Shown: positions 1,990 to 37,479 of the stretch, one piece after another
Numbering within the stretch: the first letter of the stretch is position 1
Layout: each line of letters begins with the position of its first letter
Assembly (NCBI GenBank): GCA_964247055.1
Contig: OZ176056.1
Location: 3,162,001-3,226,000, forward strand
DNA length: 64,000 nucleotides
Reading direction: 5' to 3'
DNA from: Paragordius varius
Lineage: Eukaryota > Animalia > Nematomorpha
Translations under genes and position numbers: made by a program
The notes under the pieces: generated by a model
Told to the model about the DNA's origin: nothing
What the model saw: the letters and a program-made list of their open reading frames with translations, nothing else
Database searches by the model: none

Positions 1990-4353
1990 ATGCTTTCGAA
2001 AACGAACTTTCAAAATTCTGGCATGGAAACAAAAGTGCTAAATAAAAATGTTAATTGTATAATTTTAATGGGCATACCTGGATCAGGCAAAACTACTCTT
2101 GCTAAAACAATTGTCACTCGTATAAATGATAGTAACAATTTTGAAATCAAGCATCTTGAGTTTGATAAATATCTGAACCATGAAGGATATAAACCTACGC
2201 TTAAAATTTTTATGGATATTATAATGTATGTTATTAATATGTTTGCAAGCGATCAGAAAGATAATTATATACACACAAAATATTTCGACAACCCGTTTAT
2301 TAATACCTTAATTGCCGACACAAGATGTTTGTATTTAATTATAGATGAAAATTTTGCTCTGATGTCTATGAGAACCAATATACTATTAAAACTTATTGAT
2401 GTTCAACGATTACACAAAGGTTTATTATATAAAATTTATTTAATTACATTTCTAAAATTATACTAGTTTATATAATCTTAGTAAGTTTACAATATACCAT
2501 TTTAGTTTAAACTCTTACACCGTGGTTTTTTACTATATATTCACACCAATTTAATTAAATATATGAGTTTTATGAATAGATTCGAAATATTTTTCGCAAT
2601 GATGTTGTTTATATATCGTTTAAATATGTTTGTCATTTAACTCATTAGGTTAGCCCTTAACAATTTTGGATGCTCTTTATTTTTAAAGTTTGCGATTAAA
2701 TGTTTTTATCTCTATTATATAGCTTCTTTAATATCTATTGACACCATTTTGATTAAAAACTATTTCAATATAAGTAATTGTAACATTTAAATATGAATTT
2801 CTTGATTTATTAATTGCAATTTTTCACTGAATTATATTATATAGTGTGAGAAAAATTATTCCTTAACGAAAATTGTTTAAAAAAATTTTTGAATAAAAAA
2901 GTATATAATAACTAACAAAGATTTTATGCAAAATATTGATAAAATAGATAAGATTCAATTAATTATTATGTTTAAAGCCAATAAAAACATCTATTACCGA
3001 TTTTTAAATATGGAATTTTCAGGAACACGTCAGACAAACTTACTAGTTTTCGGGTATTATAAAACCCTCATCATGAGCCAGAAATAATGAAAAAATATTA
3101 TTTTTTTATTAATTATTGAAATTCAAATATCTTGAGAATCTAAATTATAATATATTAATGAATAAAATTTAATATAAAAACAGTATAGTTAAATACTGAC
3201 ATTATTAAGAACTCTCACATTTTTATTTGATCAATGAGTTTAAATTAAACATATAAGTAGCACAATTTTTATCACATTAATACATTCATATATAATAAAA
3301 TTAAAAATTTATTTAATATTATTCGATTATGAAAACCTACACAATGAAATAGTTTTATAGAATGTTAATTTTTTATACTATTTAGAGTTCGAATTCACCC
3401 TTTAACAATTCAAATTCCCCCTCGAACAATTCAAATTCACCCTAAAAATAAATTATGTGTTTTCGAACTAATATAACTCATCATTAATATGATATATATT
3501 TATGGCATAGTGTATTATTTTTTCAGTATTATATTAATTTAAAACCAAATTTTAATTTTTAAGAATATATAAAAATATAGGTAATTTTTAATCTTAAAAA
3601 ACATATAATTAATTTAAGGGTAAATTTGAATTGTTTAAAGGTGAATTAGAATTGCAAATGGTAGATTTAAACTAACTTAGATACTTTACTTTAGATATCA
3701 ACTTAAACATTGTATTTGTACAAATCGAATGTTCTTTGGAATGCGCTATGCCCCGTGTAAGCCGTCGAAATCAAACTCAAATGCGCAATTCACCTCAAAT
3801 CGTAACTGAAACCACTATTGCTAAAATGTATGCAAATTTAACTGACCTTAAAAAGAAAGTGGGTAGGAATATGACAGTGCTTGAAAAATGGATAATCCAA
3901 CATACTATATACTTTCAAAACGATGACATTCTTGATTTGGTGAAATCAACTGAGGAATTTCAATCACGAGCTAAAAATCTTTGGGCCATGTGCCTTCAAC
4001 ATTTGTGCCCTATCAAAGATTTAATGACAATTTTAGCAACTCAAAAAGCGGAAACTAGTGAAAGATTTAGCCAGGCCGAAATGGATAGACAAATAAATTT
4101 GACGAATATTACACATGGCGTTGATAGGGTTTTACGAGGATTGATACATAGGCAAAAAAATACGGTATTCGATTATGCCAAAGCAAATTTGACCAAAAAA
4201 TTGATAATACAAAAAATCCGCATGGGACAAATAACCATCAGGAAAATTGATGAATTAACCGACACTAAGGAAGGATATGCAGTGTTTGATAATGTTAAGA
4301 ATAAAGATTACCCGCAAGAAACTTATTTCTGGAAATGTTTTCATGAAAAATAA
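1990..4353 (+). CDS. PSTK: O-phosphoseryl-tRNA(Sec) kinase (L-seryl-tRNA(Sec) kinase), 2 exons, ~362 aa
   Basis: Exons 1990-2419 (donor GTTTAT, phase 1) and 3695-4353 (acceptor TTTAG, phase 1) join in frame (1089 nt). P-loop GIPGSGKT; LIIDENFALMSMR matches the PSTK DDNF..SMR motif; VQIECSLECAMPRVSRRN matches CPLETCLQRN; DRQINLTNITHGVDRVLR matches the PSTK C-terminal DRIIC.TN..H..D..LR motif. Confidence 0.88.
3376..3663. mobile_element. 21-bp-array MITE (TACCATTTAC family), in PSTK intron
   Basis: Degenerate TACCATTTAC..GTAAATGGTA termini, subterminal AACAATTCAAATTCACCCT units, shared ~200-bp core. Confidence 0.85.
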
Positions 4354-21772: not shown

Positions 21773-23443
21773 TTAGACAATTCGAAACATTAATTATTGG
21801 AATTGCCAATCGGTTCCAAACAATGATTGGCGATAATCATATGAAATTATGTTATAATGAAAAATACTATGATGAAACTGAAATTACGAATGAGGTAAAT
21901 AATTTTACAAAAATAAAAACCAATATTTATATACTCAAATGCAATATAAACTAATATAAGTATTTTGTTATTTGATATATTGTATATTACCTTCCTTATT
22001 AAAATTATAAAAATAATCATGGTTATTTAAAAAAATATATTTTTACACATGGATTATTTTTATTATTTCAAAATTTTTTGTTATATTGGTAATTTAAAAC
22101 ACCTAAAAATGTTTTATAAGACAAAAAGAGAGCTAGCTATAATAAATTTAACATAAATGTCAGGACATACAAATTATAAATATTCCAAATTGAAATTTAT
22201 TAAATTTTCTATAATTTTTTCATTTTATTTCCAACATAATTTTTTAAATTTTTTTCATCAAATATCAATTTTATATATTTTAACAGCAAAATGACTAACT
22301 AATATGTGCCGATTCCTCCAAGTTATAACTTATTTCATACACAGTGCTCTAAATCGATGGTATAATTCCGATAAAAATATGGAAAATATATTGGGATTCT
22401 CATGTTGTTATTTGTTTTGACCATTACCAGAAATTCACCAAAATTATTACGACTTTTGTGGTAATTAGCTATATCGAATGGCTAATTTGTGCACAATATG
22501 CTAAATAATTTTTGGTAAAAGCTAAATTTATTCCAAAAAATATAAAAAATGTATGATAGGAATCATATCAAATTTTAAGTGTGCTTCGAAACTGTTAATT
22601 GTTAATTTGGCAAATATTCTTAAATGAGATTGAGCAATAAAATTTTTATATGCTCAATGACAAAAAAGTTTTATACTGAAATGAATTTTCTTATAATAGT
22701 TTTTTCGTTTCCACCATGTTTTCAAAATACAAACTCGCTTGAATAATATTTTACTCTAAAATAAATTTTTATCAAAATAATCTAATCTTTCATAAAAACC
22801 TTTCTTTGGTGTCAAAATTTTACATATATTAAGGAATTTTTTTATTTTACAATAGGCATTTACGCGTTTAAGATATCCTCCCCATTTTAGAAAGTTTAAA
22901 AATGTAAAACTTTCCCACTATAAATTAATAATTAAATTGTTTGGCTTTTTAAACATTTTTTTATATTCATTAATTTTTCAGGAAATAGCCTATATCACCC
23001 TAAGAATAATTAACAAAATGTGAACAAATTTTTCTCTATTGCGGATCAGTTATCACAAAAGTGGTTTAAATTTCTTACTTTAAGGGCCAAATTTAAAAGC
23101 ACCATGAGATAATAATTGGGATACATTTTTCTTTCCGATATTGGTGAACACTGTACAAAATTATATAAATTGTTGTTAAACATTAACACTTATAAAAAAT
23201 CGAATAACTAAATCTTGCATGTACCTTTTACAGATTGTTATTATGCATAGATTAAAAGATATTGTATGAAATAGCAATAATATTTGGTGACAGATAATAA
23301 TTTTTATTACAGCCCGTTACTTAGAAATATAATTTGGCTTTATAGAAAATAAATTACAATAAAAAATCTCTATCAAATACATCGAGACTCGGTGTTTTAC
23401 CTTCTTTTTTATCGGTGCACGCAAAAATTATTTTGATATAAAC

Positions 23444-24247
23444 CAGGGCTTGGAACCGGAACCCGGTACCTGGGATTTTAACAAGAACCGGTTCCATTGG
23501 GATGGTACCAACGCGGTTTCCGTTCCACTTCTCCGAGAACCACCCCGGTACCGATTCCAAAATTTCAGGAATCACCTTTGTTCTATCTATAAACTTTTTG
23601 GAACCAACCCGGTTCCGGTTCCACCCCCTTAATTACAGGTTCCCATAATATTTTTATTATAAAAATTATTTAAATTTGATTGTACCACTATATATTGCAT
23701 ACGTCAAACTTTAAACCTAAAATAAGCGCCTAATTTTGTATTAGCGGTATCTGAATTTTAGGCGATTCTACTCTTCTAAAAAAACTAATAGTCATAACTC
23801 GAGTTTGTTTATAATACATATGTTCGTATATATAGGTCTCCGTTAAAAGAAGTTTTTTCACCCTTAATTTTCTAGTTTCAGACTTGAGAAGCAGTTTGAC
23901 GAGCGAATTGCTTGGTCCTATAATTTTTTAAAGTTAAATAAAGATTTTTTAGATGCCATACATAATTTATCACTCATTATATACCTTCGTACTTATACAT
24001 TTTCCTATTATATTTAAATAATTTGTTTCATTTATTATGCTACACTAATTATCCTTCACTATACATTTGGCAATTTATAATAAATTATTTGATTTATAAT
24101 TGTTAATATTTTGGTTGTCATATTTTAATAATAATTTTGTAAATCATTTAATAAAAAGTCAGGAACCGAAAATGGAACTGGTTCCGGAACCGCTAAATTT
24201 TAAGGAACCCACGCGGTTCCGGTTCCAATTGTTCAAAAACCGACCTG
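23444..24247. mobile_element. hAT-like non-autonomous element with GGAACC/GGTTCC subterminal repeats
   Basis: CAGG..CCTG termini; 8-bp TSD ATATAAAC / TTATAAAC; clusters of GGAACCGG/CCGGTTCC at both ends. Confidence 0.8.
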
Positions 24248-25653
24248 TTATAAACACATTTTTAGGGTGAACCCATTTTATGCTGAAAATTGAGGTTTTC
24301 TATCCAAATATACAAAAATAAAATTGTCGCACTATGTATGTATTTATAGGTAAACGTTATAATGCAAAAACTTTTTTATGTAACTGTATAACCAATGCGG
24401 ATATAATTATAGGCTGCATATACATACAAGATTCAAGTCAAAAAAGTTGTGTACAGTCAGATTCAAAAACAGGATATATCTAGGGATGTGCTTTAATAAA
24501 ACCATGTATAAAATTAAAACGTTTATCATGCAATTGTCGCTTTTTTTAATTTTTAGCCATGTCCCTCTACACACCTGCTCTTTACCTTTCATTAACATCA
24601 TCTCCAGTGATTGTAGTTTATATAAAATAAACTACTTTATTTTGTGAAATTTTGATAGCTTATCTTATGATCATAGAGCATAGACCTTTAGTCAATTGAA
24701 CTTAGGTTTTTTCAATATTAACTTTGAAGTCGATACATTTTAACTTAGCAATATGTGATTTCTGTTTGTATTTTTGTATTATAAAGTAAGCGCTAAAATA
24801 ATTTATTTTATTTTGTTAACATTTCTAAACTCTGTGACTTTTTACCCTAATACTCAAAATTTTCATTGTTATGCGCATTTAAAGCTTCATAATAAAGTTT
24901 GGCAATATTCTTCTTATAAATACGCTTCTCAACGATCAATATAATGTTAACCACAAATTTAAACATAAAATGCAAAATAAATTTAAAATAGTGTCTTAAA
25001 GAAACAAAATCAGGTGGATCGCATATATCAATCAGAAAAAGCTATATCGGAGTCCTGAAGTGGGTCAAATATGATGTGGAAATTTGGTATAAATTAATAA
25101 TATTATGCGCAATCTTGTCTTGTTTGCGTTTATAAATAACTCATTCCACCGATTGCATGAGATTATTGAAATATGTATTGTTATATTGCTTTAAATTTCG
25201 AATAAAACATTAAGGCATTGAGTTTTACTGAAAAAAGATAATAAACATTCGCTAAATTACTTTTTATTTTATTAGATAATTAAATGACCAGTAAGCCACA
25301 AAAATCACATTCCCTCAAAAAAATTCTTAATTTTATCTATGTTTACTAATTTTTCGAGCTAAACCATAAGTTAAAATATTTTTATGAAAAATGCGAATGT
25401 TAATATGTATAATAATTATAATTTATTGCCGAGATTTTACTAATAATAATGATATAAGATTTATACATATTATTTAATGTGAATATGAGTATAAAATGGT
25501 GAATCAATAAAAAATGGAATAAATTGACTATTAATTTGGTGGTGGTTGGAATCCATCTTTTCCAGGAGTCATATTCTAAATTTACTAACTTTTTATCTTG
25601 TTTCTTACTGTTCAAATCCTACTTAACTTTTTTTCTAAAACTTTTTTGGTTAT

Positions 25654-28600
25654 TTAAAGTAAGGAATAGCCATTTATGTGATTGTACTTAAAATTAAAAC
25701 TGGCAGCTAAGTCTGATTGTTGGTCCGTTTGAATTCGTCGTGTAACATTGTATTGAGTTATCAAAACCATATCTTCATAAGCAAAATTATAAAATGTATC
25801 CAATGTTGGACATTCAATCTCCAATATTTGATGATTATTTGTTAGAGTCATAGTTGATTTAAAATTTTGCCCATTTACCTGTGCTAGGTTGGGAACGTTT
25901 CGATTGATAAGACATGTGAAATCAGTTTGAATGCCCTTCCCATTTTTAATGTTAACATCTATAGAATTAATAATGTTCCACGCTGCTAGAGATGTACCAT
26001 AAGATTGATGTTGTGGTGGATTCTGGTTACGATTGGTTTTAGAAAATTTTAGATTTACTTTATTAACAATCATCATTTTTTTCTTATTAACTCCAATACT
26101 AAGTAGTGTATGCGTTGTTAAACCCAACAATTTTGATACGGCAGAATTTTTGGAATGGTATATGAATGTGGTTTGGGGATTTGTCCTGCCCTCCAAAAAG
26201 GTTTCAAGGTGATGACCCCATTTATCAAATATATATGTTTCTTTTAGTGTTTCATCCAATACCATGTATGTGCTACTGGGAGTTTTACGATCCATTACAT
26301 TTGAGTCATGTATTTCTGAGGTTATTGCGGGTGAATTTATATAAAATACTCTGTCATGATTTTTGAACCATGGAATACGATTTATAAAGATGGTTTGAGG
26401 TTGAAACCGTATTTCCTCTCTAATGTCTCCTTTAACATTATCCATTATTATAAGTTGGGAATCATCTGGGGTAATGTGTAATTTAATTTGATTATTAGTA
26501 TCATTTACTTGACTTTTAAATGTTATTTTATGGACCAGTGTAAGTCGTTGAATATGTTTTACGTATTGATAAATGTAACCATACTCTATGCTGGAAACTG
26601 CAATATACAGAATATCCAACTCTTTTGCCAGTGCAAAACTATCTATTTTTAGGTTGAAAATATCAGTATTCTCAGCAAACATTTGATTGTAAGTTTGTGT
26701 CTTTATAATCTCGTCGATTGATATAAGGGGGACAGCTATTCGATTTACCAAATTTAGTTCATATATTACGCTGCGGTTTGATAAAATCATTAATGATGGC
26801 TCATTATGACAGTATATAAGGTTTGTTGTGGGTCCAATCAAATTCATCTAAAAATTAATTAAAAAAGTAAATATTCAGTAAATTGTATCAGCTAAATAAA
26901 TGAGTATAAATTAAGATTATAATAATTTTTACCTTGCTAAATGGAATTATGATATCGGGAACGATAGGGTCAATACCGGTTTTAAAGCCATTATCAATTA
27001 TCGTTTTAACTTTCAAGTTTTTCAAATTTATATGTTTCAAAATATTTGTTGAATGTTTCATAGGGTCGATCGCAACGTAATAAAGTACGCTTTCTGACGG
27101 ATCAATGGCCATTTCTATAAGAATAATATGCACATAAATAATGAGAAAAAACGTAAAATTATACAAACAAATGTTTTTTTTTCAAAAGTACAAACCATAC
27201 TTTTTTAAACTTTATTTTTTCTATTTAATATACGTATTTGATCGTGTTACAACAGTCATTTCTATTTCATACTTTAAAACAATGAAATTTAAAAAAAAAC
27301 AAGTTCAAAAAACAGCGGTTTTTTTATATTAAAAATTGTTTTTATGTTTACACGTGTTGTCCGTAAAATTTAAATTTTTATTATTGTAATTCTAATTCAG
27401 CTAAAATTAAATGAATTATTGGGCAAATTTTCGATTGCTACAAGTAATCTTTGTCAAATGTAAAAAATAAAATTAAAATATAAACTAATAAAGCATAAAT
27501 TCTCCAGGTTAATGTCGTATATTTTTAGAAAGATTAAAAAAATTTACCTGTAGGAATAAGCTTGGATTCCGTCAATATCGGTGTTTTAGCCATTTGTGGT
27601 ATATTAAATGCTGCCAAACTTGGTGACACGTCTTTAACATTAACCCTAAGAATCATATTTTGGTTTGGAAGTGAGACATACAAGTTGTATGCAGTAGTAG
27701 GGACATCTAACATTCGACCATGGATAACATAGGCATTGGGTAGTTGCTTAAATTTAGTGTTATATTTTTGATCCTCGCTATTTTTCAAATAATCTTGCAA
27801 GTTTATAAGCGGATTTTTTACGATAATCTTGGGTAGGGGTTGATTCTTAGAAGAAGTTTTTAGGGAATCATATGTGTTGAGAGTGTTTGTGACATATTTT
27901 ATACGATAAATTATGCCATTTTTCGTAAGCGCAAATGCCCCATACTGTATTAATGGGTGCTTACTACCAACATATGGTGGAATGTATGGTTTTGATGTTG
28001 AAATCAGAATAGATTCTAAGGTTTGACCTGTAAAATTGACAATTATAAATTAAAATTTGGTTTATTCCTAGCTTTCAACAGCTAAAAAATACAATAAGAA
28101 ACATGATCAAGTGTTATTACCGAATCCTTTATCCAATAGGATTGGAATTGATTTCTTATCTCTTTTCATGACATAATTCATATCTAGGAAATGTATATCA
28201 CCGGTGCCTTTGTAAAGAATATCTAGAGAAAGAGGGAGAAACAAAAATATAGTTTTGCAAATTTTATAATACACACATGCAAAAAAGTAAGGATTCTAAA
28301 ATTATTTTCAGTATTTGATTTAACATACTTTGATAGGGATCTAATCTGTGGAATAGATTAACATTCCAAGCACTATCTCCCAATATCTGTGTTATTGGCA
28401 AATTTTGTCCAGCAATAGGCAATTTAAAAGTTTGAATTAACCGTTTTTCACAGTTTTTATAGTAGATAAATTCCAAGGAAACTAAAATGTCATAAAATAA
28501 CAATTATTACGGTATATGAGGAAATTTTTTTTATTATTTTTTTAAAAAAAAATGATAAAATCTACCATAAGCCATGGCCATGCCATAGACAGCTTGTTTG

Positions 28601-29040
28601 TAAGCATTTTTACGATCCCATAAAAATTCGATTAAAACGGATTTTTTCGATGCTAAATCGCTTTCAACCGATGATTGATACCGTGTACCTTGAATATCAA
28701 TCTAGAAAAATAAAAGTTTTATATTTAATGTTTACATATATTATGATTTTATGGATTTTTTTATATAAAAAAAAGATTGTATTACTTGAATATTTAGCCT
28801 TTTTATATAAGTGTAAGGGTTGCCTTCCGGTATTGTAACATTTAGACTTATGCTCGTTTTATAGGCCGAGTCATATATGCTTGAATGTACAAGGCTAACA
28901 TTTGTTCCTGGGATGGGCATGTTCAAATTTATAGCCTATAAATACAGTAAAAATTGTAAACTATACAGACCAAACGTTAAAAGACAAAAGAAATTTTCAA
29001 AAGATAACCAACTATACTTTTTTACACCCTATTTTTTCCT

Positions 29041-29111
<71 letters not shown>

Positions 29112-32100
29112 TTAACTACAATCGTAAAATATATAAATTGTGTTTCCATAAAAATATATATTATCGTATGTTTACTCGATTTTTTGGATCATTCTTTACA
29201 TATTGATTCATATTGTCGCCTTTAAAAGTATCAATGGTCATATCTTGTCGTGGATAGATATTAGGGATTGTTGAGATACTAATCGATGGCACAAATATAT
29301 TTGTGGAAGAATTATCACAGAAAGTATTAGGCAATGGTTCTGATTGTCGCCGTACAGAAAATGCATCTTTTTCCAATTTTTTATTATAAGTATTCAAAGT
29401 TTGATAAGTTTCATTGTGTTTGTCTAGGGGTAGGGTTGATTGAAGCATAAGAGTTATATCGTGCGGTAGAACTAAAAAGTCATTGGTGGGCACGTAAACT
29501 GTAAACTTTGTGCGTTGAAATGGTTCTTTATACGCGGTCAAGGTGACATAATTCCCTCCATTCACTAGCATGTCAAATCTAAAAAACATAATATTATTAG
29601 ATAATACATATGGCTAGCCTCTATTTTATATAAAAAAGGTAATTGGTATAAGGTATGAAGGTATTATGTTTACGGTATAACAAGCCGAAACATCTAAAAA
29701 GATAAAAAATAAAAATTGTGCTTGAAATGTTGTGATGGAAGTTACTGTAAACATAATAATAAAAATGAAAAACGCGGAAATCACAAAAACAATGCAGAAA
29801 CTAAGACTACGCGGTAAAATTATTAAGCAGACATTATCTGTTTTATTTATAAGGCAAAATTCGTTAAAATTAAGATAAGAAAAGTATATGAAGGAAAAAA
29901 CTGTAAACGCATTTTTCTTAAATTATTAACGGTTAATATTAACTATATCATTGCAAAAATATAAACGGGTAAAGCTTACTCTCCATTAAATCGTGTCAAA
30001 GTATATCCAAATTTCATGTTATTTTCTACACTGATACGGACACCCACTATAATTTGCCCAAAGGAATCAATGATTCGGCCTTTGACCACAGATACGGTGC
30101 TGTATAATTGAAAATAATGTTTGAATTAATTTATTTTAAGTAACATTTTTCAAAGATTAACCATAAAAATTGTTACAGCTTTTTTATGGATGCTTAAATA
30201 AATAATAATTAAATGTTAATCCATAAAATTTAGTCATTTTAACAATATCAATCCAATTATGCTATATGTATTCGAATCTCTACATCTGTTTTAAAAATTT
30301 TTGGAATATTGATAAAATATTTTACTAACTACATTTCACTTACTGTTCATCAAAGGCTTCAGATTGGGCATGGACTTGTACACCGCCCTCTTCTATAAGG
30401 AACCGTACTCTGTCCATAAACGAAGAAACCGGTTTTATGGATTGTTTTGACAATAGAATATCGATGGGGTCTGCACTCGATTTACATAATATGTTGTTGC
30501 GACAAAATTGAGTTTTACAGCATTCAGAATCCTGACAATCAATTAAACCATCTATAAAAAGGTTGGGGAAAAAGGTGTTATAAACCAGAATTTCTAAATA
30601 CAGTATGTTCCTAGCTTTTCACAAATTATTGCCAGATACCTTAATCAGTAAAAGGCAATTTTATTGGTTTCAAGTTATTTTTTATACTTTTTATTGCTAT
30701 TATTAGCCAATAATTTTCCTTGGTGTCTATGCTATATGGAAATATTTATGAAAGGCTGTCAATGTATTCTTACTCATACTGTACTTTTGTACCAAATTAT
30801 TTTAAATAACTACCATTATCATTATCGATTCCATCAGTACACATAGTTTCATACGGTGTTCCACAATCCACACCTCTCCACCCATATTTACAATGGCATT
30901 TCCATGTATCTGCCTCACTGTTTATAGGAACCATTTGTGATGATATATTCTGACTATGCATATTTTGCTTCCAAACATAAAATCCTGTTCCACCATTTTG
31001 TGTAGTTAAAGAACTAGTAAGAGAGTCCGAAGATTGTCTAGTAGAACCTGATGATAAAGTTCTTCCTTCAGGGCCAGAGGAGGCAAGAGATGAACCTTGT
31101 TGGCTATTAGCAGCATTCAATAAACAAATCCCATTGTGATTACATTGATTGGGACATCCTTGTATATCACACGTCATCCCATTCCAACCCGTATTACAGT
31201 GACACCGACCCTCGTGACAAATCCCATGATTTGAACAAACCATAGATGTCTCCTCAGAATTTGCGCCACAACCGCCATTTTTTTCATTCGCTGTTTCTTT
31301 GGCTTGCTTTTTTATTGTCAATAATTTTGTCGTAGAACTATTTTGTTTATTTTGTGAGATCGTTTGTGATGGTATGACGTTGAAGAAAGCGGTTACATTA
31401 AATCCGGCTAGAAATTATAAATAATAGGTGTTATTGATTGATTTAATAAGTGACTTTAAAGAGCTAAATTATACAAAATGACCACACTTACATGTTACAT
31501 ATTCGATAGAGCTATCTGCCATCCTAAGAATATAAGAATTCGTTGCATATTCACAGTTCGGACCGGAAAAACCGGGAGCACATAGGCATTTTCGGATTAA
31601 ATCTTGACCATTTGGAGACCGAGATAAGGCACAGGCACCGTTTCCCGAACAATTTTTAGGTTTGCAGTAATCGACTAAATTTATAAAATGATGTAAACCA
31701 TAATTCTTGAAATTTTATCGACCTATAATATTTGAATGAAAAATAATGGTCAAGAAAAGTATTTTTACAGATAATTAGTTTATAACAAAAGTTTGGTTTA
31801 CAGATAAAAGCTTCGACTTATATAAAAAGTAAGCGCAATAGGTTAAGATCTATAATTTAGTAACTGTTAATTTAACCACTCCATAATAATAAAATATTTT
31901 TTGAAAAAATCATATAAGGTGTTTTACCATTCCCACAATCCCAACCAAACCACCCATCAAAGCATTGACAAAAACCGTTTTCACAACTTCCTTGATTTTT
32001 ACAATTTTGAGGACATATGGACCCATTTTGAGTAGGGTTTGCTGTAAAACTTGGATAGATTATAAAATCCAAATTGACATTATCATCAAAAAGATTTAAT

Positions 32101-35100
32101 TGCTGGCTTGTATTCAAAACCTTTGAATCAAGGGTTTTAGATTTGGATGAAATGGAATCAATGAGATAAAAGACCAAGTATAAATTTTTAGGGCGAATTG
32201 CTTCTGTAGTATTGTATGGGTATTGATAAAGCGTAACCTAAAATTCACAATTTATAAATAATGGGAGGAAAAGTAAGGTAGCTAAGTTTAATATTATTAA
32301 ATAATGTTTCTGTACATTCAAGTCAAATAATTATTATTAAATTGTATTTTTATGATATCATCAAAGTTATTCAATTTATGAGACAAATGTTGTCACATAT
32401 GGAAAAATTTATGGTTTGTATAAAATCAGCCTTTTACTTTTTACGTTTTGTCTTTCCTCTAAATTTTTACTTGTAAATATTATTTTGTAAAATTTAAATT
32501 TTAACATACTCTACCTGTTGCCAAAAATTATTTGTTGCCATTTGTTGATTAGTTATGTGGAGAAATGTATCATATTGGGTAGGAGTAGGAATTGAATCAG
32601 CACGAACATATATCCCTAAATAATATTATATTTAAATTAGCATTTTTTATAAAGGCTTGCATTATTTAATTTATATTTTTGGTACTTTTTCTCTGTATAT
32701 TCCTTTAAAACTAGAAAGCATAATAAATGAACTTTATAATATTATATGCATAAAAATCATTATACCCAAATCAAAGGAGGAATCCAATAACGAAATTGGT
32801 AATTGTTGGCGAGATTGTTTGCTAACGATCGATAAATTAGCCAAGAGTACAAAAGGTGTACCCATTTTTATGTAGGGGGCCAATATTTTAGTTGTGGTTA
32901 TATCGGGAGAGGAAGAACCTATATCTACCCTGTATATTTGGATATTATTGCGTCTCAAGAGAATTTTATGTGGAGTGACAAGTCTCAAATGGGCTGGAAT
33001 TTCGCCTAGTGCTTGTCCAACAAGATTTTTTGTGTCCAAATTATATGGTTTAGAGTTATGAAACGTATGTAATAATAATGATTGTGTTGGCATGGTATTT
33101 AAGATTTCTTGTTCTTGTAGTTCTTGAGATTCTTGTATGATCGGATAATAATTTGGAAGAAACGTATTATAAAATTGAGTTAAATTTGAGTTTTCAGATC
33201 TTAAATGACCCGTTCTCCACCAATTTTGATCCGAGTGTTTATTATTTGGGAAGGATGTGTTGTAAATTGGCATTGAGTTTAAATTTTGGCTTTTACTATT
33301 TTTACCGCCCTTCCAGGGATGCCATTTGGATTTGCCAAAACTTACCGCTAATAACCAATAAAAAATTATTGATATTTCACTCAAAATATTTAATATTTTT
33401 TATGGAAAATAATCAAATTCTTACCTAATAAATAACTTATAAAGAAGAGGCTTAGGAGTGAACACACAAATAGCACAAGTGACATTTTACGCCAATTACA
33501 TTCATACGTCTTTTCAGCTTGCGAGAATGGCCATTGAATTGCATAACTCCAATCTTTGTCTTTTAATCTAAATGTAAATAAGTTTTTACTTATTATACTA
33601 AACACATAAAAATTATTTAACATTATTCCAATAAAAATAATATATATATGGTTTGCAAAATTAGACAATTTATTGCGAAAATGCTTTTTGAGATTGAATA
33701 AGTATAAATGAATATTGGTAAACATGGCACATTTTAGGATTAAATGGCAGTTTTAGGTCCCCAAACTCCATTTTAAGGCAGTAAAATATTTGTCTCCTAT
33801 TTTTTTTAATTAAAATTCTTCTTCGGAAAATATATATTTACGAGTCAGTATATCAATATGGTGAGTCCCCCACAAAAATGGCTTAAATTTTGTAAGATAA
33901 TTATTTTATGAGGAGGTTGACAAAGATAAATGATGCAATCTGAATATAATTATTTTTTTAGGATTTTTTTATTTTTGATGGAAATTTAATATAAACTACG
34001 ATTTCTTTTTTTAGGCATATGAGTATATTTGATATTTAAGCCATAAAATGGCATTCTTTCAAAAATATATATACTATGCATTTTAGTAAATTTTTTATTA
34101 TGGTATCTCCCCCATATGTAAGTGAATAAAAATGGTCTAGAAGAAAATAGCCTTATAGTACAATATGTACAGATCAGTGCACTTTTGATGTATTAAAATT
34201 ATAGTATTTATTATATATGGTTCTATATCATTATTAAATATATTATATTGGATGACGCTTTTTTGTAAAGCCAACACAATATATAAATGGAAGTCAATAT
34301 GGATTTTGTGTTTTAATTAATGCCAAAAAAGAACAAAAAAATGTTTCTAAGAAAGATAAAAAAATCAAGATAAGAATTTCACCAAATTTTTCTCCTATTT
34401 ATATAACAAGTGGCCGCATAAATTAAACTTTTTAGTGAGTGATAAAAAAATTTTCAAGCAAAAATAAAATACTTTTGTTTTTTATTGAGCAAACTGCTAT
34501 CTGTAGTTGAACTGTTGGTAGATCCGTCATTCATCCTCATTTTCGTTTTATTTTCAGTTTTAATTGGGGTTAAATCTCCATTTTTATGTTGTTTGTTGTT
34601 CATAAACCACGCCAAGGGTGACTTGATTTTCGCCCAAAAGCTTGGGTGCGAGTTGGTTTGAGAAGCTGATCGAAGCGTTATAGCTGATAGGAGAGGTATA
34701 GGGGGATAATTTGATGAATTGCTATCAAAGTATCTCATATTATTTATATTATCTGTCACATTAGCTGTCATCGGGTTGTTTAATGTTTGTTGGTTATAAT
34801 TAGGGTTATTCTTATTCTGGTGATGATACAAATAAAAATTTAGTAGTCTCGGGTCGTAATATGGTAGAAGGGGTGGACTTTGCGGATCTAATACCCCCTG
34901 GTCATCGTATATGGCTGTTGTCCCACTCAAAGGCAAGGTATCTTGTGCAATGTGTGAAAAATTGTTGATATTTGTACTTTTTGTTCGCTGATTATTTGTC
35001 TGATTATTTGAATTATTAGTATTAGAACTGCCTGTAGATGTTTCATTACGGTTATTTTGGGCATACAGATAAGGTGAAAATGAGTTATGATGATGATCTA

Positions 35101-36604
35101 GACCTGGTGCTGCAAAATAATTGTATTGTAGTGGATAATAGGGATTTGTACCGCCATATACAAATTGTTCTCCCGCTTCAGAGGAGTTATTACCAAAAAT
35201 GTCACCCATGGAACGTCTGCAGTTTTGACTAACAGTTCCTTGGTTGACCGATTGCGTATTACCATAAAAATTTTGCTGTTGGCAAGTAGACCCTAGAAGA
35301 ACAGATAAGTTTTTTGGCGGGCCTCTGGTATCAAGTGTATGTAAAAAATTATTGATATTTGTCCTGGGATTGTTATTGGTATGTTTTGCAATCATAGAGT
35401 GTCTGTGGAAGCCGTTAGACATATTATCTCTTGTTCTGTCATACAAAGTGTCACCAAGTGTCGCGTTTCCCGCCAAATTTTGTTTGCCTTTAGATGAATC
35501 ACTGAAATCTTGAAAATTATGATGCTGTGGAATGTTCAAATGTTGTTTTTGTTGTTCATATTGATTCTGAAGTAAATCCATAGGGTCGGCATATGTATGA
35601 GATGGGATTCTGCATATAAAGCAAAAAACGAAACATTAAAAATAAATTTTTGATTAGATTTCAATAAATTAAATAAATGCCTAAATTGGTGATAATTACT
35701 AGGAATTGAATTAAATATAACCATTTAAAATGAAAATGATAAGTATATATGTATATTGGTATTTGCTAAGGAATAGTGTACAGGAGGAATATATACATCC
35801 GTTGTTAATTAATTTTTTTTGTTCCTCCGTTATATTTTTGCTTGTGTTTTATCCTGTTTAACTTTTTATCGTTTTAATATGGAATTTCATGGAATAAAGG
35901 AAGTAAGATTAGAGACCGTTATGTTATGTTTTACTTTATTTCCAATTAGTGCGCAGCTACTGAGTTCAAAATACTCCTTTATATTTTTCAAAAAAAAAAG
36001 TTATCTTTAAAGGCGTTTCAATACCTTTTTGTTTGAAATTTGATGTTCACCACATTTTGTTACGAAATAAAACGTATAAATTTAAAAAACACACCAACTT
36101 GAATTTAAAAAAACTTCCGGTAGCCCGGATTTTGTAGAATTCATACAGATTTTTAAAAATTTATAGCCTCTTTTATCATTTTAATATTTTTTATCTTTGC
36201 GTTTTTTTTCATTCTGGTTATAAATATTAGTTAATTAAATTGATAGCTAGACTTTTGTTCTGCCTTTAAAATTAATTTGAATTTGAAATTCACGTTTTAA
36301 AAAAATCTCTCCAGGTGTAAGAAAAAATCTATAATATATCTTTTTAAAAAAATATCAAATCTATACAAAAAAGTATCAAATTCTGAACTAAGTTAAACAA
36401 TATAATATAATATAATATTTAAATAATTTTTGAAAAATATATAAAGGTAATATATATTAAAATTGAAACATAATGAGAATATCAAGAGTTATCGGAAGTA
36501 TTTTATGTGTTTAATAATTTTTTCCTAATGTAAATATTGACAAAATTATCAATTTTAAATTATTATATATAATTATATATTTTTGGTGATTCCATATTGT
36601 TTTC

Positions 36605-36650
<46 letters not shown>

Positions 36651-36780
36651 TGGTTGAAAATTGATACTTACCATGCTATTTTCAATAAATTTAAGTAAAC
36701 GCTAAAACCAAATGAAATGAATAGCCAACTTTATTTGTTTAAATTACATAAAAAATTTATAGATTTTTGGCGCGAATGAA

Positions 36781-36820
<40 letters not shown>

Positions 36821-37479
36821 TATAATAAGGGTTTATTCGAATGTTCCTACAAAAAAATGGTTAATCAAGTTTTTTGCATTTGCATTTACCTGTGATATTT
36901 ATAATTATTTTGTGGTTTTTTAATGTTCTGATAAGGTTTTTGATGAAAAGCGAAATAATTGGTGAATGGCCTGCTAAAATCTTTGGTAAAATTTTGAACA
37001 GTTCTAGAATCTTCTGCTGGCTTTAGAACTTTGCAGTTTTCTGCATGTGTTGTCGCTATTCCATTCTCCTGGTATTTATCACTATCCTCGTCAAAACTAA
37101 TAAAATTTTCATTTTTAAAACTACAAAATGGCGGTTGTTCTTTCCTATCAAGAAGAAGCATATTTTTATTGGATTCCGAAATAGATTTAAAATGATTAGT
37201 TGCGTTCTCATTATTATTACGGTTGTTTAAAATGTAACAGTATAAATGTTCCGATGAGGGTTCCTGGCCCATACCACTTGAATTTGCGGGCAGTTGGCCT
37301 ACAAACTGAGAAGAACCTTGCAGTTTTCTTTTTGAATTCGTAGCGGATGAATTAATTATCCAGGGAAATTTTGTTTCAAAATTATTATTTGAATTAATCA
37401 AGTTTTTGGGGGGAGGGGGAGGTGCCGGTTTACATGCTAAGAAATGTTCCATTTCTTCCCAATTAATCTTTGAATCCAT
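25654..37479 (-). CDS. TENM: Teneurin (Ten-m/Odz family type II membrane protein), 18 exons, ~2247 aa, C-terminally truncated
   Basis: Phase-consistent exons (minus): 37479-36890, 35609-34473, 33567-33425, 33347-32766, 32615-32515, 32237-31928, 31674-31492, 31407-30814, 30551-30344, 30099-29980, 29578-29200, 28935-28786, 28701-28566, 28481-28329, 28222-28121, 28027-27548, 27114-26933, 26847-25654 (6744 nt). Polyproline intracellular domain, TM segment CNWRKMSLVLFVCSLLSLFFISYLL, GIYVRADSIPTPTQYD motif, EGF repeats, CTDGIDNDNDGLIDCQDSECC, VKGRIIDSFG..VGVRIS..FDMLVNGG, FLWDRKNAYKQAVYG, ILYKGTG, NHL-like region and the first YD-shell strands. Confidence 0.92.
29043..29108. repeat. (TA)n microsatellite, longest in window
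   Basis: ~66 bp pure AT dinucleotide in a teneurin intron. Other tracts at ~6231, 7882, 12450, 20681, 36607, 36785, 40285 and 42728. Confidence 0.95.

Follow-up and report, generated by a model that had tools for sequence, protein, structure and literature searches.

The Locus and the Gene Model

The stretch of genome considered here, a window of 64,000 nucleotides on contig OZ176056.1 of the nematomorph Paragordius varius, carries a gene of the teneurin family on its minus strand, which probably ends, at a TAA codon at position 25654, before the YD-shell barrel and the other parts of the toxin-derived half of the protein. The exon model was built from the DNA of the window, and comprises 18 exons running from an ATG at 37479 to the TAA at 25654, with 6,744 coding nucleotides that specify 2,247 amino acids. 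Every intron in this model is of the GT-AG type, the phases are consistent, and there are no internal stops. An earlier note on this DNA had described a phase-consistent chain of 18 exons ending at the same codon, and this chain was recovered in the rebuilt model. The last exon is a 397-codon open frame (25654-26847, minus strand), the longest in the window, which begins directly after a TTTTAG acceptor and closes with the TAA at 25654-25656. Length, phase, hydropathy, and motif counts refer to the joined model, and the database searches were run exon by exon. The features of the locus are listed in Table 1.

Table 1. Features of the teneurin locus and its downstream flank, in window coordinates.
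Feature	Positions	Strand	Basis
Whole teneurin-like gene	25654-37479	-	18-exon model, GT-AG, phase-consistent
Exons 1-2 (37479-36890, 35609-34473): N-terminal cytoplasmic part with poly-proline stretch	34473-37479	-	Open frames and sequence
Exon 3: predicted single transmembrane helix, type II (model residues ~605-625)	33425-33567	-	Top hydropathy peak
Exons 6-8 (32237-31928, 31674-31492, 31407-30814): teneurin-type EGF repeats	30814-32237	-	Pfam
Exon 9 and end of exon 8: cysteine-rich region	30344-30551	-	Regular-expression match, model residue 1205
Exons 10-11 (30099-29980, 29578-29200): TTR domain and lineage-specific insert	29200-30099	-	Pfam, PDB
Exons 12-15 (28935-28786, 28701-28566, 28481-28329, 28222-28121): FN-plug-like, ending in ILYKG	28121-28935	-	PDB, exon 13
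Exons 16-17 and first 202 codons of exon 18: ~455 residues where an NHL propeller would lie	26242-28027	-	Position
C-terminal tail, 195 residues from ETYIFD; would-be YD-shell start	25657-26241	-	Open frame, GC gradient, motif test
TAA stop	25654-25656	-	Sequence; identical short-read contig 25558-25909
Poly(A)-signal-like hexamers (ATTAAA 25478, AATAAA 25427)	25422-25478	-	Pattern scan
Downstream non-coding DNA, 26% GC	21773-25653	-	Open-frame scan
UBL3 (ubiquitin-like 3), single exon, 237 residues	21059-21772	-	Pfam Rad60-SLD_2, 1.6e-22; homologues named UBL3

Identity of the Gene

The membership of the gene in the teneurin family is indicated by a series of matches in the expected order. 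The EGF_Teneurin model of Pfam matches exons 6-8 at 7e-12 (45.6 bits, against a cut-off of 24.3), and the same exons are also matched by EGF_TEN (1e-10, partial) and EGF_2, giving about four EGF repeats in the model. The cysteine-rich consensus common to all teneurins, taken from Tucker et al. (PMC3278476), ExxCx(D/N)xxDx(D/E)xDxxxDCxxx(D/E)CCxxxxCxxxxxC, finds an exact fit at model residue 1205. This is followed by two adjacent exons that match the Pfam TTR_TEN1-4 model with scores of 37.5 and 33.8 bits against a cut-off of 27, and the top 13 PDB matches of the second of these exons are all teneurins. These are the only two TTR_TEN1-4 matches in the whole of the very AT-rich, 110.6-Mb assembly, and both lie at this one locus, which is therefore taken to hold the single teneurin gene of the genome.

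The FN-plug is recognized less clearly. The 13 PDB chains retrieved by exon 13, which carries an FLWDRKNAY-type motif, are all teneurins, colinear with the TTR match, at weak E values of 0.45-1.4, and the Pfam FN-plug model has no match on this gene. On the N-terminal side, the Pfam Ten_N model does not match the cytoplasmic part, and the type II topology is predicted from a lone strong hydropathy peak at residues 605-625, preceded by some 600 residues with no signal-like start.

By these domain matches, the gene is a teneurin across its N-terminal two thirds. The parts that can be recognized are the EGF repeats, the cysteine-rich region, the TTR domain, and, weakly, the FN-plug, so that its description in the earlier note as an otherwise intact teneurin is too strong.

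The Stop Codon and the Downstream DNA

Read support near position 25654 had been named beforehand as a check on the proposed end of the gene. Independent contigs assembled from short reads of this species are identical to the window (0 differences) over 24696-25539 and 25558-25909, spanning the TAA at even depth, which makes an indel or an assembly error at this codon unlikely. The frame that leads up to the stop has the character of coding DNA, as the last 188 codons would stay open by chance in the local non-coding composition with a probability of only ~3e-7, and the tail has a coding-like gradient across the codon positions (GC1 > GC2 > GC3). The poly(A)-like hexamers ATTAAA and AATAAA lie 175 and 226 nucleotides, respectively, from the TAA. 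The removal of the stop by an intron finds little room here, given that no GT..AG pairs span the TAA other than those of 47 and 53 nucleotides, which lead to a new stop within 3-8 codons.

The DNA further downstream, as far as UBL3, has no coding capacity. In the 3.9 kb between the TAA and UBL3, the longest open frame has 92 codons and is located inside a GC-rich palindromic repeat, and there are no Pfam matches. Apart from UBL3, the minus strand of positions 1-25653 has no open frame of more than 100 codons and no Pfam match, and it carries no YD motif, which agrees with the earlier observation that no YD-like frame is present on this strand in 1-25400. The identification of UBL3 as the next gene downstream was likewise upheld.

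The length of the protein is also at variance with that of other teneurins. In mouse Ten3 (chain 6FAY_A), approximately 1,630 residues follow the FIWDK-type motif, versus ~700 in the present model, and the tail has 195 residues where ~1,150 would be expected, the YD shell being about 750 residues long.

The Search for the Barrel in the Assembly

Given the possibility that the barrel is encoded elsewhere, as by the gene fission offered as an alternative in the earlier note, six-frame searches of the whole assembly with hidden Markov models (HMMs) were made, using seven models for the YD shell, the RHS/YD repeats, the Rhs core, the ABD, and Tox-GHH. No candidates were recovered anywhere in the assembly with TEN_YD-shell, RHS_repeat, or Rhs_assc_core, or with Teneurin_ABD and Tox-GHH, although these last two models are silent in control genomes too. 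The protein itself stops before the canonical position of the ABD and Tox-GHH/TCAP. The lone YD_repeat_2x match in the genome (G000:C3:4897349-4897429, E 0.46) falls inside an EMP70/TM9SF (nonaspanin) gene at 4896800-4899700 and is regarded as a chance match, which leaves the gene fission with no positive trace.

The same six-frame method does recover split and diverged genes in this genome, including the TTR exons of the teneurin itself and the 7tm_2 and SUEL lectin domains of a latrophilin-type gene. The latter is an adhesion G-protein-coupled receptor gene on the plus strand of another contig (G000:C3:10481892-10489782), with the domain order SUEL-lectin, HRM, GAIN, and 7tm_2. The absence of the barrel from the HMM results nevertheless represents only moderate evidence, because the models also miss the FN-plug and propeller regions of this very gene, and because those for the ABD and Tox-GHH are silent in the controls.

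The Region between the FN-Plug and the Stop

Beyond the ILYKG motif (residue 1597) come approximately 455 residues, the size of a propeller, before the 195-residue tail begins with ETYIFD at residue 2053. Exons 12 and 14-18 return nothing from the Pfam FN-plug and TEN_NHL models, PDB, or NCBIfam; TEN_NHL has no match in the genome as a whole, and no PDB chain is retrieved for the propeller region. The neighbors of exon 18 in a language-model atlas that bear a family assignment all belong to NHL-repeat clusters, at similarities of 0.86-0.89, which offers a lead that lies below the level of evidence. A match of exon 17 to a Ty3 peptidase (E 3e-4, below the cut-off) was judged to be due to chance. 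The presumed NHL propeller is assigned by position, with no significant similarity, and the same holds for the "YD-shell start".

The strands of the tail had previously been read as the first residues of the YD shell. This found no support from Pfam, NCBIfam, PDB, or the language-model atlas, and what remains of it is two loose motifs. Neither the last exon nor the tail has a match in Pfam, NCBIfam, or PDB (for the RHS_repeat and YD_repeat_2x models, at E values of up to 10 on the last exon), the ETYIFD segment retrieves only unrelated PDB chains, such as Mre11/Rad32, and no chain is retrieved by the last 100 residues. The language-model neighbors of the tail include no RHS family and nothing YD-like. 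An exhaustive HMMER search of 1.84 billion representative proteins returned 0 matches to the last exon, for which the genome, too, contains no paralogue, and a word-index search with the TTR/FN exon also returned no match. The ectodomain contains the loose YD-like pattern at only two points, residues 2055 and 2078, which are 23 apart (P ~0.001 in shuffled sequences), for a pattern that was chosen post hoc, after the motifs had been noticed.

Selection on the Coding Sequence

The 25 coding differences listed for the second haplotype and a sister taxon include 17 that are synonymous and eight that are non-synonymous, where only 21% would be expected to be synonymous. Over these listed differences, this corresponds to a crude ratio of non-synonymous to synonymous rates (dN/dS) of 0.13, with a binomial P of 6e-7, and the excess of synonymous changes indicates that the gene is under selection, rather than in decay.

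The second haplotype of the sequenced sample (run X1) differs by approximately 8% from the assembly (25558-25909 and 27813-28152), and run X5, labeled as another organism, has most of its listed alleles in common. This sharing suggests a species complex, introgression, or mislabeling.

Other Features of the Window

A short GC-rich palindromic element lies at 23445-23629, with GGAACCGGAACC-type arms that are 87% complementary and a partial second copy at 24194-24227. The earlier note had placed a hAT miniature inverted-repeat transposable element in the DNA downstream of the gene, an assignment that was not confirmed, as only this element (~23445-23629) was seen there. Intron 16 (27158-27551) contains a very high-copy repeat, with a word depth of 6,400-36,500 in run X1, compared with ~100 in the single-copy flanks, and long (AT)n/(TA)n microsatellites are found in introns 11 and 1 (29032-29121 and ~36640-36830), where the reads appear to be cut at the first of the two.

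A word-index search with UBL3 for a syntenic relative recovered only distant UBL3s, with an odd top match to a tandem-repeat UBL3 of a moth, the score of which is inflated. Downstream of UBL3, where genes are sparse, an open frame of the P-loop NTPase type is present at 1990-2466 (plus strand), with weak nSTAND3/AAA matches.

Weighing the Alternatives

The interpretation favored here is that of a true barrel-less teneurin, maintained by selection and ending at the TAA at 25654, which the sequence evidence makes rather more probable than all other readings. The central claim of the earlier note, a teneurin that has lost its toxin-derived half, stands at the level of the DNA in so far as the loss is concerned, and the intactness of the remainder does not. 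The toxin-derived half has probably been lost, given the read-supported stop, the lack of coding capacity downstream, the absence of a barrel signal from the assembly, and purifying selection on the gene. The wider claim, that a bilaterian lineage dispenses with the YD barrel, the ABD, and Tox-GHH/TCAP in its sole teneurin, while the EGF-TTR-FN-propeller part remains under selection and a latrophilin-type receptor is kept, is evenly poised on the present evidence.

A number of observations weigh against this interpretation. The sensitivity of the HMM searches is limited, as seen in the failure of the TEN_NHL and FN-plug models on the regions of this gene itself, and a very diverged barrel gene may exist elsewhere in the genome. 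Two presumed RNA runs (X6 and X7) contain only the repeat of intron 16, which their longer contigs touch at 27263-27297, and one piece of 29 bases, so that the 3' end, and a model with no splicing beyond exon 18, are predictions from the DNA. The second haplotype has two gaps somewhere within 25558-25909, and the contig of the sister taxon ends before the stop. In the last 100 codons, three synonymous differences are set against three non-synonymous ones, so that the selection seen across the gene as a whole does not extend clearly to the tail, and the last exon has no relatives among the proteins searched, so that the truncation is described for this species only. Structure prediction, which had been proposed as a check, speaks neither for nor against the reading: the AlphaFold2 models of the last exon and of the 200-residue tail, made with no alignment, both have a predicted local distance difference test score (pLDDT) of ~32, which is uninformative.

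The barrel may be present but missed, either because exon 17 or 18 is spliced to distant exons, or because a separate gene encodes the YD shell, ABD, and Tox-GHH following a fission, in a form that is highly diverged or unassembled. This would be favored by the failure of the Pfam NHL and FN-plug models on this gene, by the extreme divergence of the proteome, of which the last exon, with 0 matches in 1.84 billion proteins, is an example, and by a 3' end predicted from the DNA. It is nevertheless unlikely, as seven independent HMMs gave no credible match in 110 Mb, the last exon has no paralogue in the genome, and nothing in 1-25653 is able to encode ~900 residues, while the 195-codon tail stays open up to a stop that the reads confirm, with poly(A)-like signals beyond it.

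Another improbable alternative, to be given about the same weight, is that the domains beyond the FN-plug have been wrongly assigned, and that the last ~650 residues constitute either a shrunken and rewritten remnant of propeller and barrel together, or a lineage-specific replacement, making the gene a remodeled derivative, rather than a teneurin cut off where the shell begins. Exons 16-18 do lack significant NHL or YD similarity, the atlas similarities to NHL clusters lie below the level of evidence, and the folding predictions are unusable. This alternative is opposed by the canonical spacing of the TTR domain, the FIWDK-type motif, ILYKG, and the ~455 residues that follow, by the two YD-like motifs, which are found only at this point, and by the atlas neighbors of exon 18, every family-bearing one of which is an NHL cluster. 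An artefact or a dying gene is highly improbable, be it an error of assembly or a deletion, a null allele on the haplotype that was sequenced, or a pseudogene. In its favor are the two haplotypes, ~8% apart here, with two unplaced gaps near the stop in the second, and a gene model backed by DNA contigs only. Against it, Illumina-type contigs are exact across the stop and the 3' flank at even depth, 18 of the 18 exons are intact, and there is a strong excess of synonymous changes.

A Scenario for the Probable Loss of the Barrel

If the gene is a true barrel-less teneurin, it would be the only teneurin of the genome, and would encode a type II membrane protein of 2,247 residues, in which the 195-residue tail may be a leftover of the first YD strands. 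Approximately 900 residues would have disappeared in this lineage, namely the greater part of the YD shell, together with the internal linker, the ABD, and Tox-GHH/TCAP. The protein would still act as a surface molecule of adhesion or recognition through its EGF-TTR-FN-propeller part. It could no longer enclose a toxin-like C-terminus, and would lack the face of the YD shell where the lectin domain of latrophilin docks in vertebrates. The FN-plug and the propeller, which are normally packed against the barrel, may have diverged beyond recognition following its loss.

Comparison with Other Teneurins and Significance

The superfold formed by the FN-plug, the NHL propeller, and the YD shell is treated as the signature of the teneurins, and their C-terminal exon encodes TCAP. 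Like the canonical members of the family (Ten-m/Odz; TEN-1 of C. elegans, Ten-a and Ten-m of Drosophila, and TENM1-4 of the vertebrates), the present model has a type II topology, EGF repeats, the cysteine-rich consensus, the TTR domain, and, weakly, the FN-plug motif, with the same order of parts, and a single copy, as in the non-arthropod protostomes. It differs from these proteins in being ~900 residues shorter beyond the FN-plug, with the YD shell, the linker, the ABD, and Tox-GHH/TCAP undetected, as well as in the unrecognizable propeller region and the reduced set of only about four EGF repeats. The bilaterian teneurins are described as having ~2,800 residues in each species examined, with no grossly truncated genes (PMC3278476, PMC6428715), and a single copy is found in the non-arthropod protostomes (PMC6428715). 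No evidence for grossly truncated teneurins has been found in other species (PMC3278476), and the only truncated form reported is a short splice isoform of chicken teneurin-2, cut between EGF repeats 7 and 8 (cited in PMC3278476). A barrel-less sole teneurin would thus be unusual for a bilaterian. In the literature library searched, no paper links the Nematomorpha with the teneurins.

The chicken isoform resembles the present model as a teneurin product with no YD-repeat half. This isoform is, however, an alternative transcript of a full-length gene and stops before the cysteine-rich region, whereas here, it is the genome itself in which no barrel was detected, and the model retains the TTR domain, an FN-plug-like segment, and a region the size of a propeller. 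The teneurin-related immense proteins (TRIPs) of the hemichordates and cephalochordates (PMC6428715) are, like this gene, lineage-specific derivatives in which the teneurin part has drifted, and they are the only derived family described. The TRIPs are additional paralogues, enlarged by over 4,000 residues at the C-terminus, while the gene described here is a sole copy that would have lost its C-terminal half. The bacterial FN-plug/NHL/YD-shell proteins and the TcB/TcC toxins share their ancestry with the C-terminal superfold of the teneurins (PMC5851990, PMC6978801). Parts of this superfold that are FN-plug-like, and possibly NHL-like, remain in the P. varius gene, and the closed YD shell around a C-terminal payload, by which TcB/TcC and the bacterial proteins are defined, is missing here.

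In the vertebrates, the lectin domain of latrophilin docks on the YD shell (PMC6978801). This docking surface is absent from the present model, yet a gene of the latrophilin type, the usual partner of the teneurins, is retained on another contig, and if the barrel-less reading is true, the teneurin and latrophilin can therefore be uncoupled. The gene would then represent a natural deletion experiment, in which the N-terminal module of the ectodomain has a function that is independent of the barrel, and a sole teneurin that has lost the barrel half, and is still under selection, would show which of the functions of the teneurins have no need of it. It would also provide a test case for teneurin-independent functions of latrophilin in the invertebrates, and a striking example of reduction at the level of the domain in the genome of this parasite.

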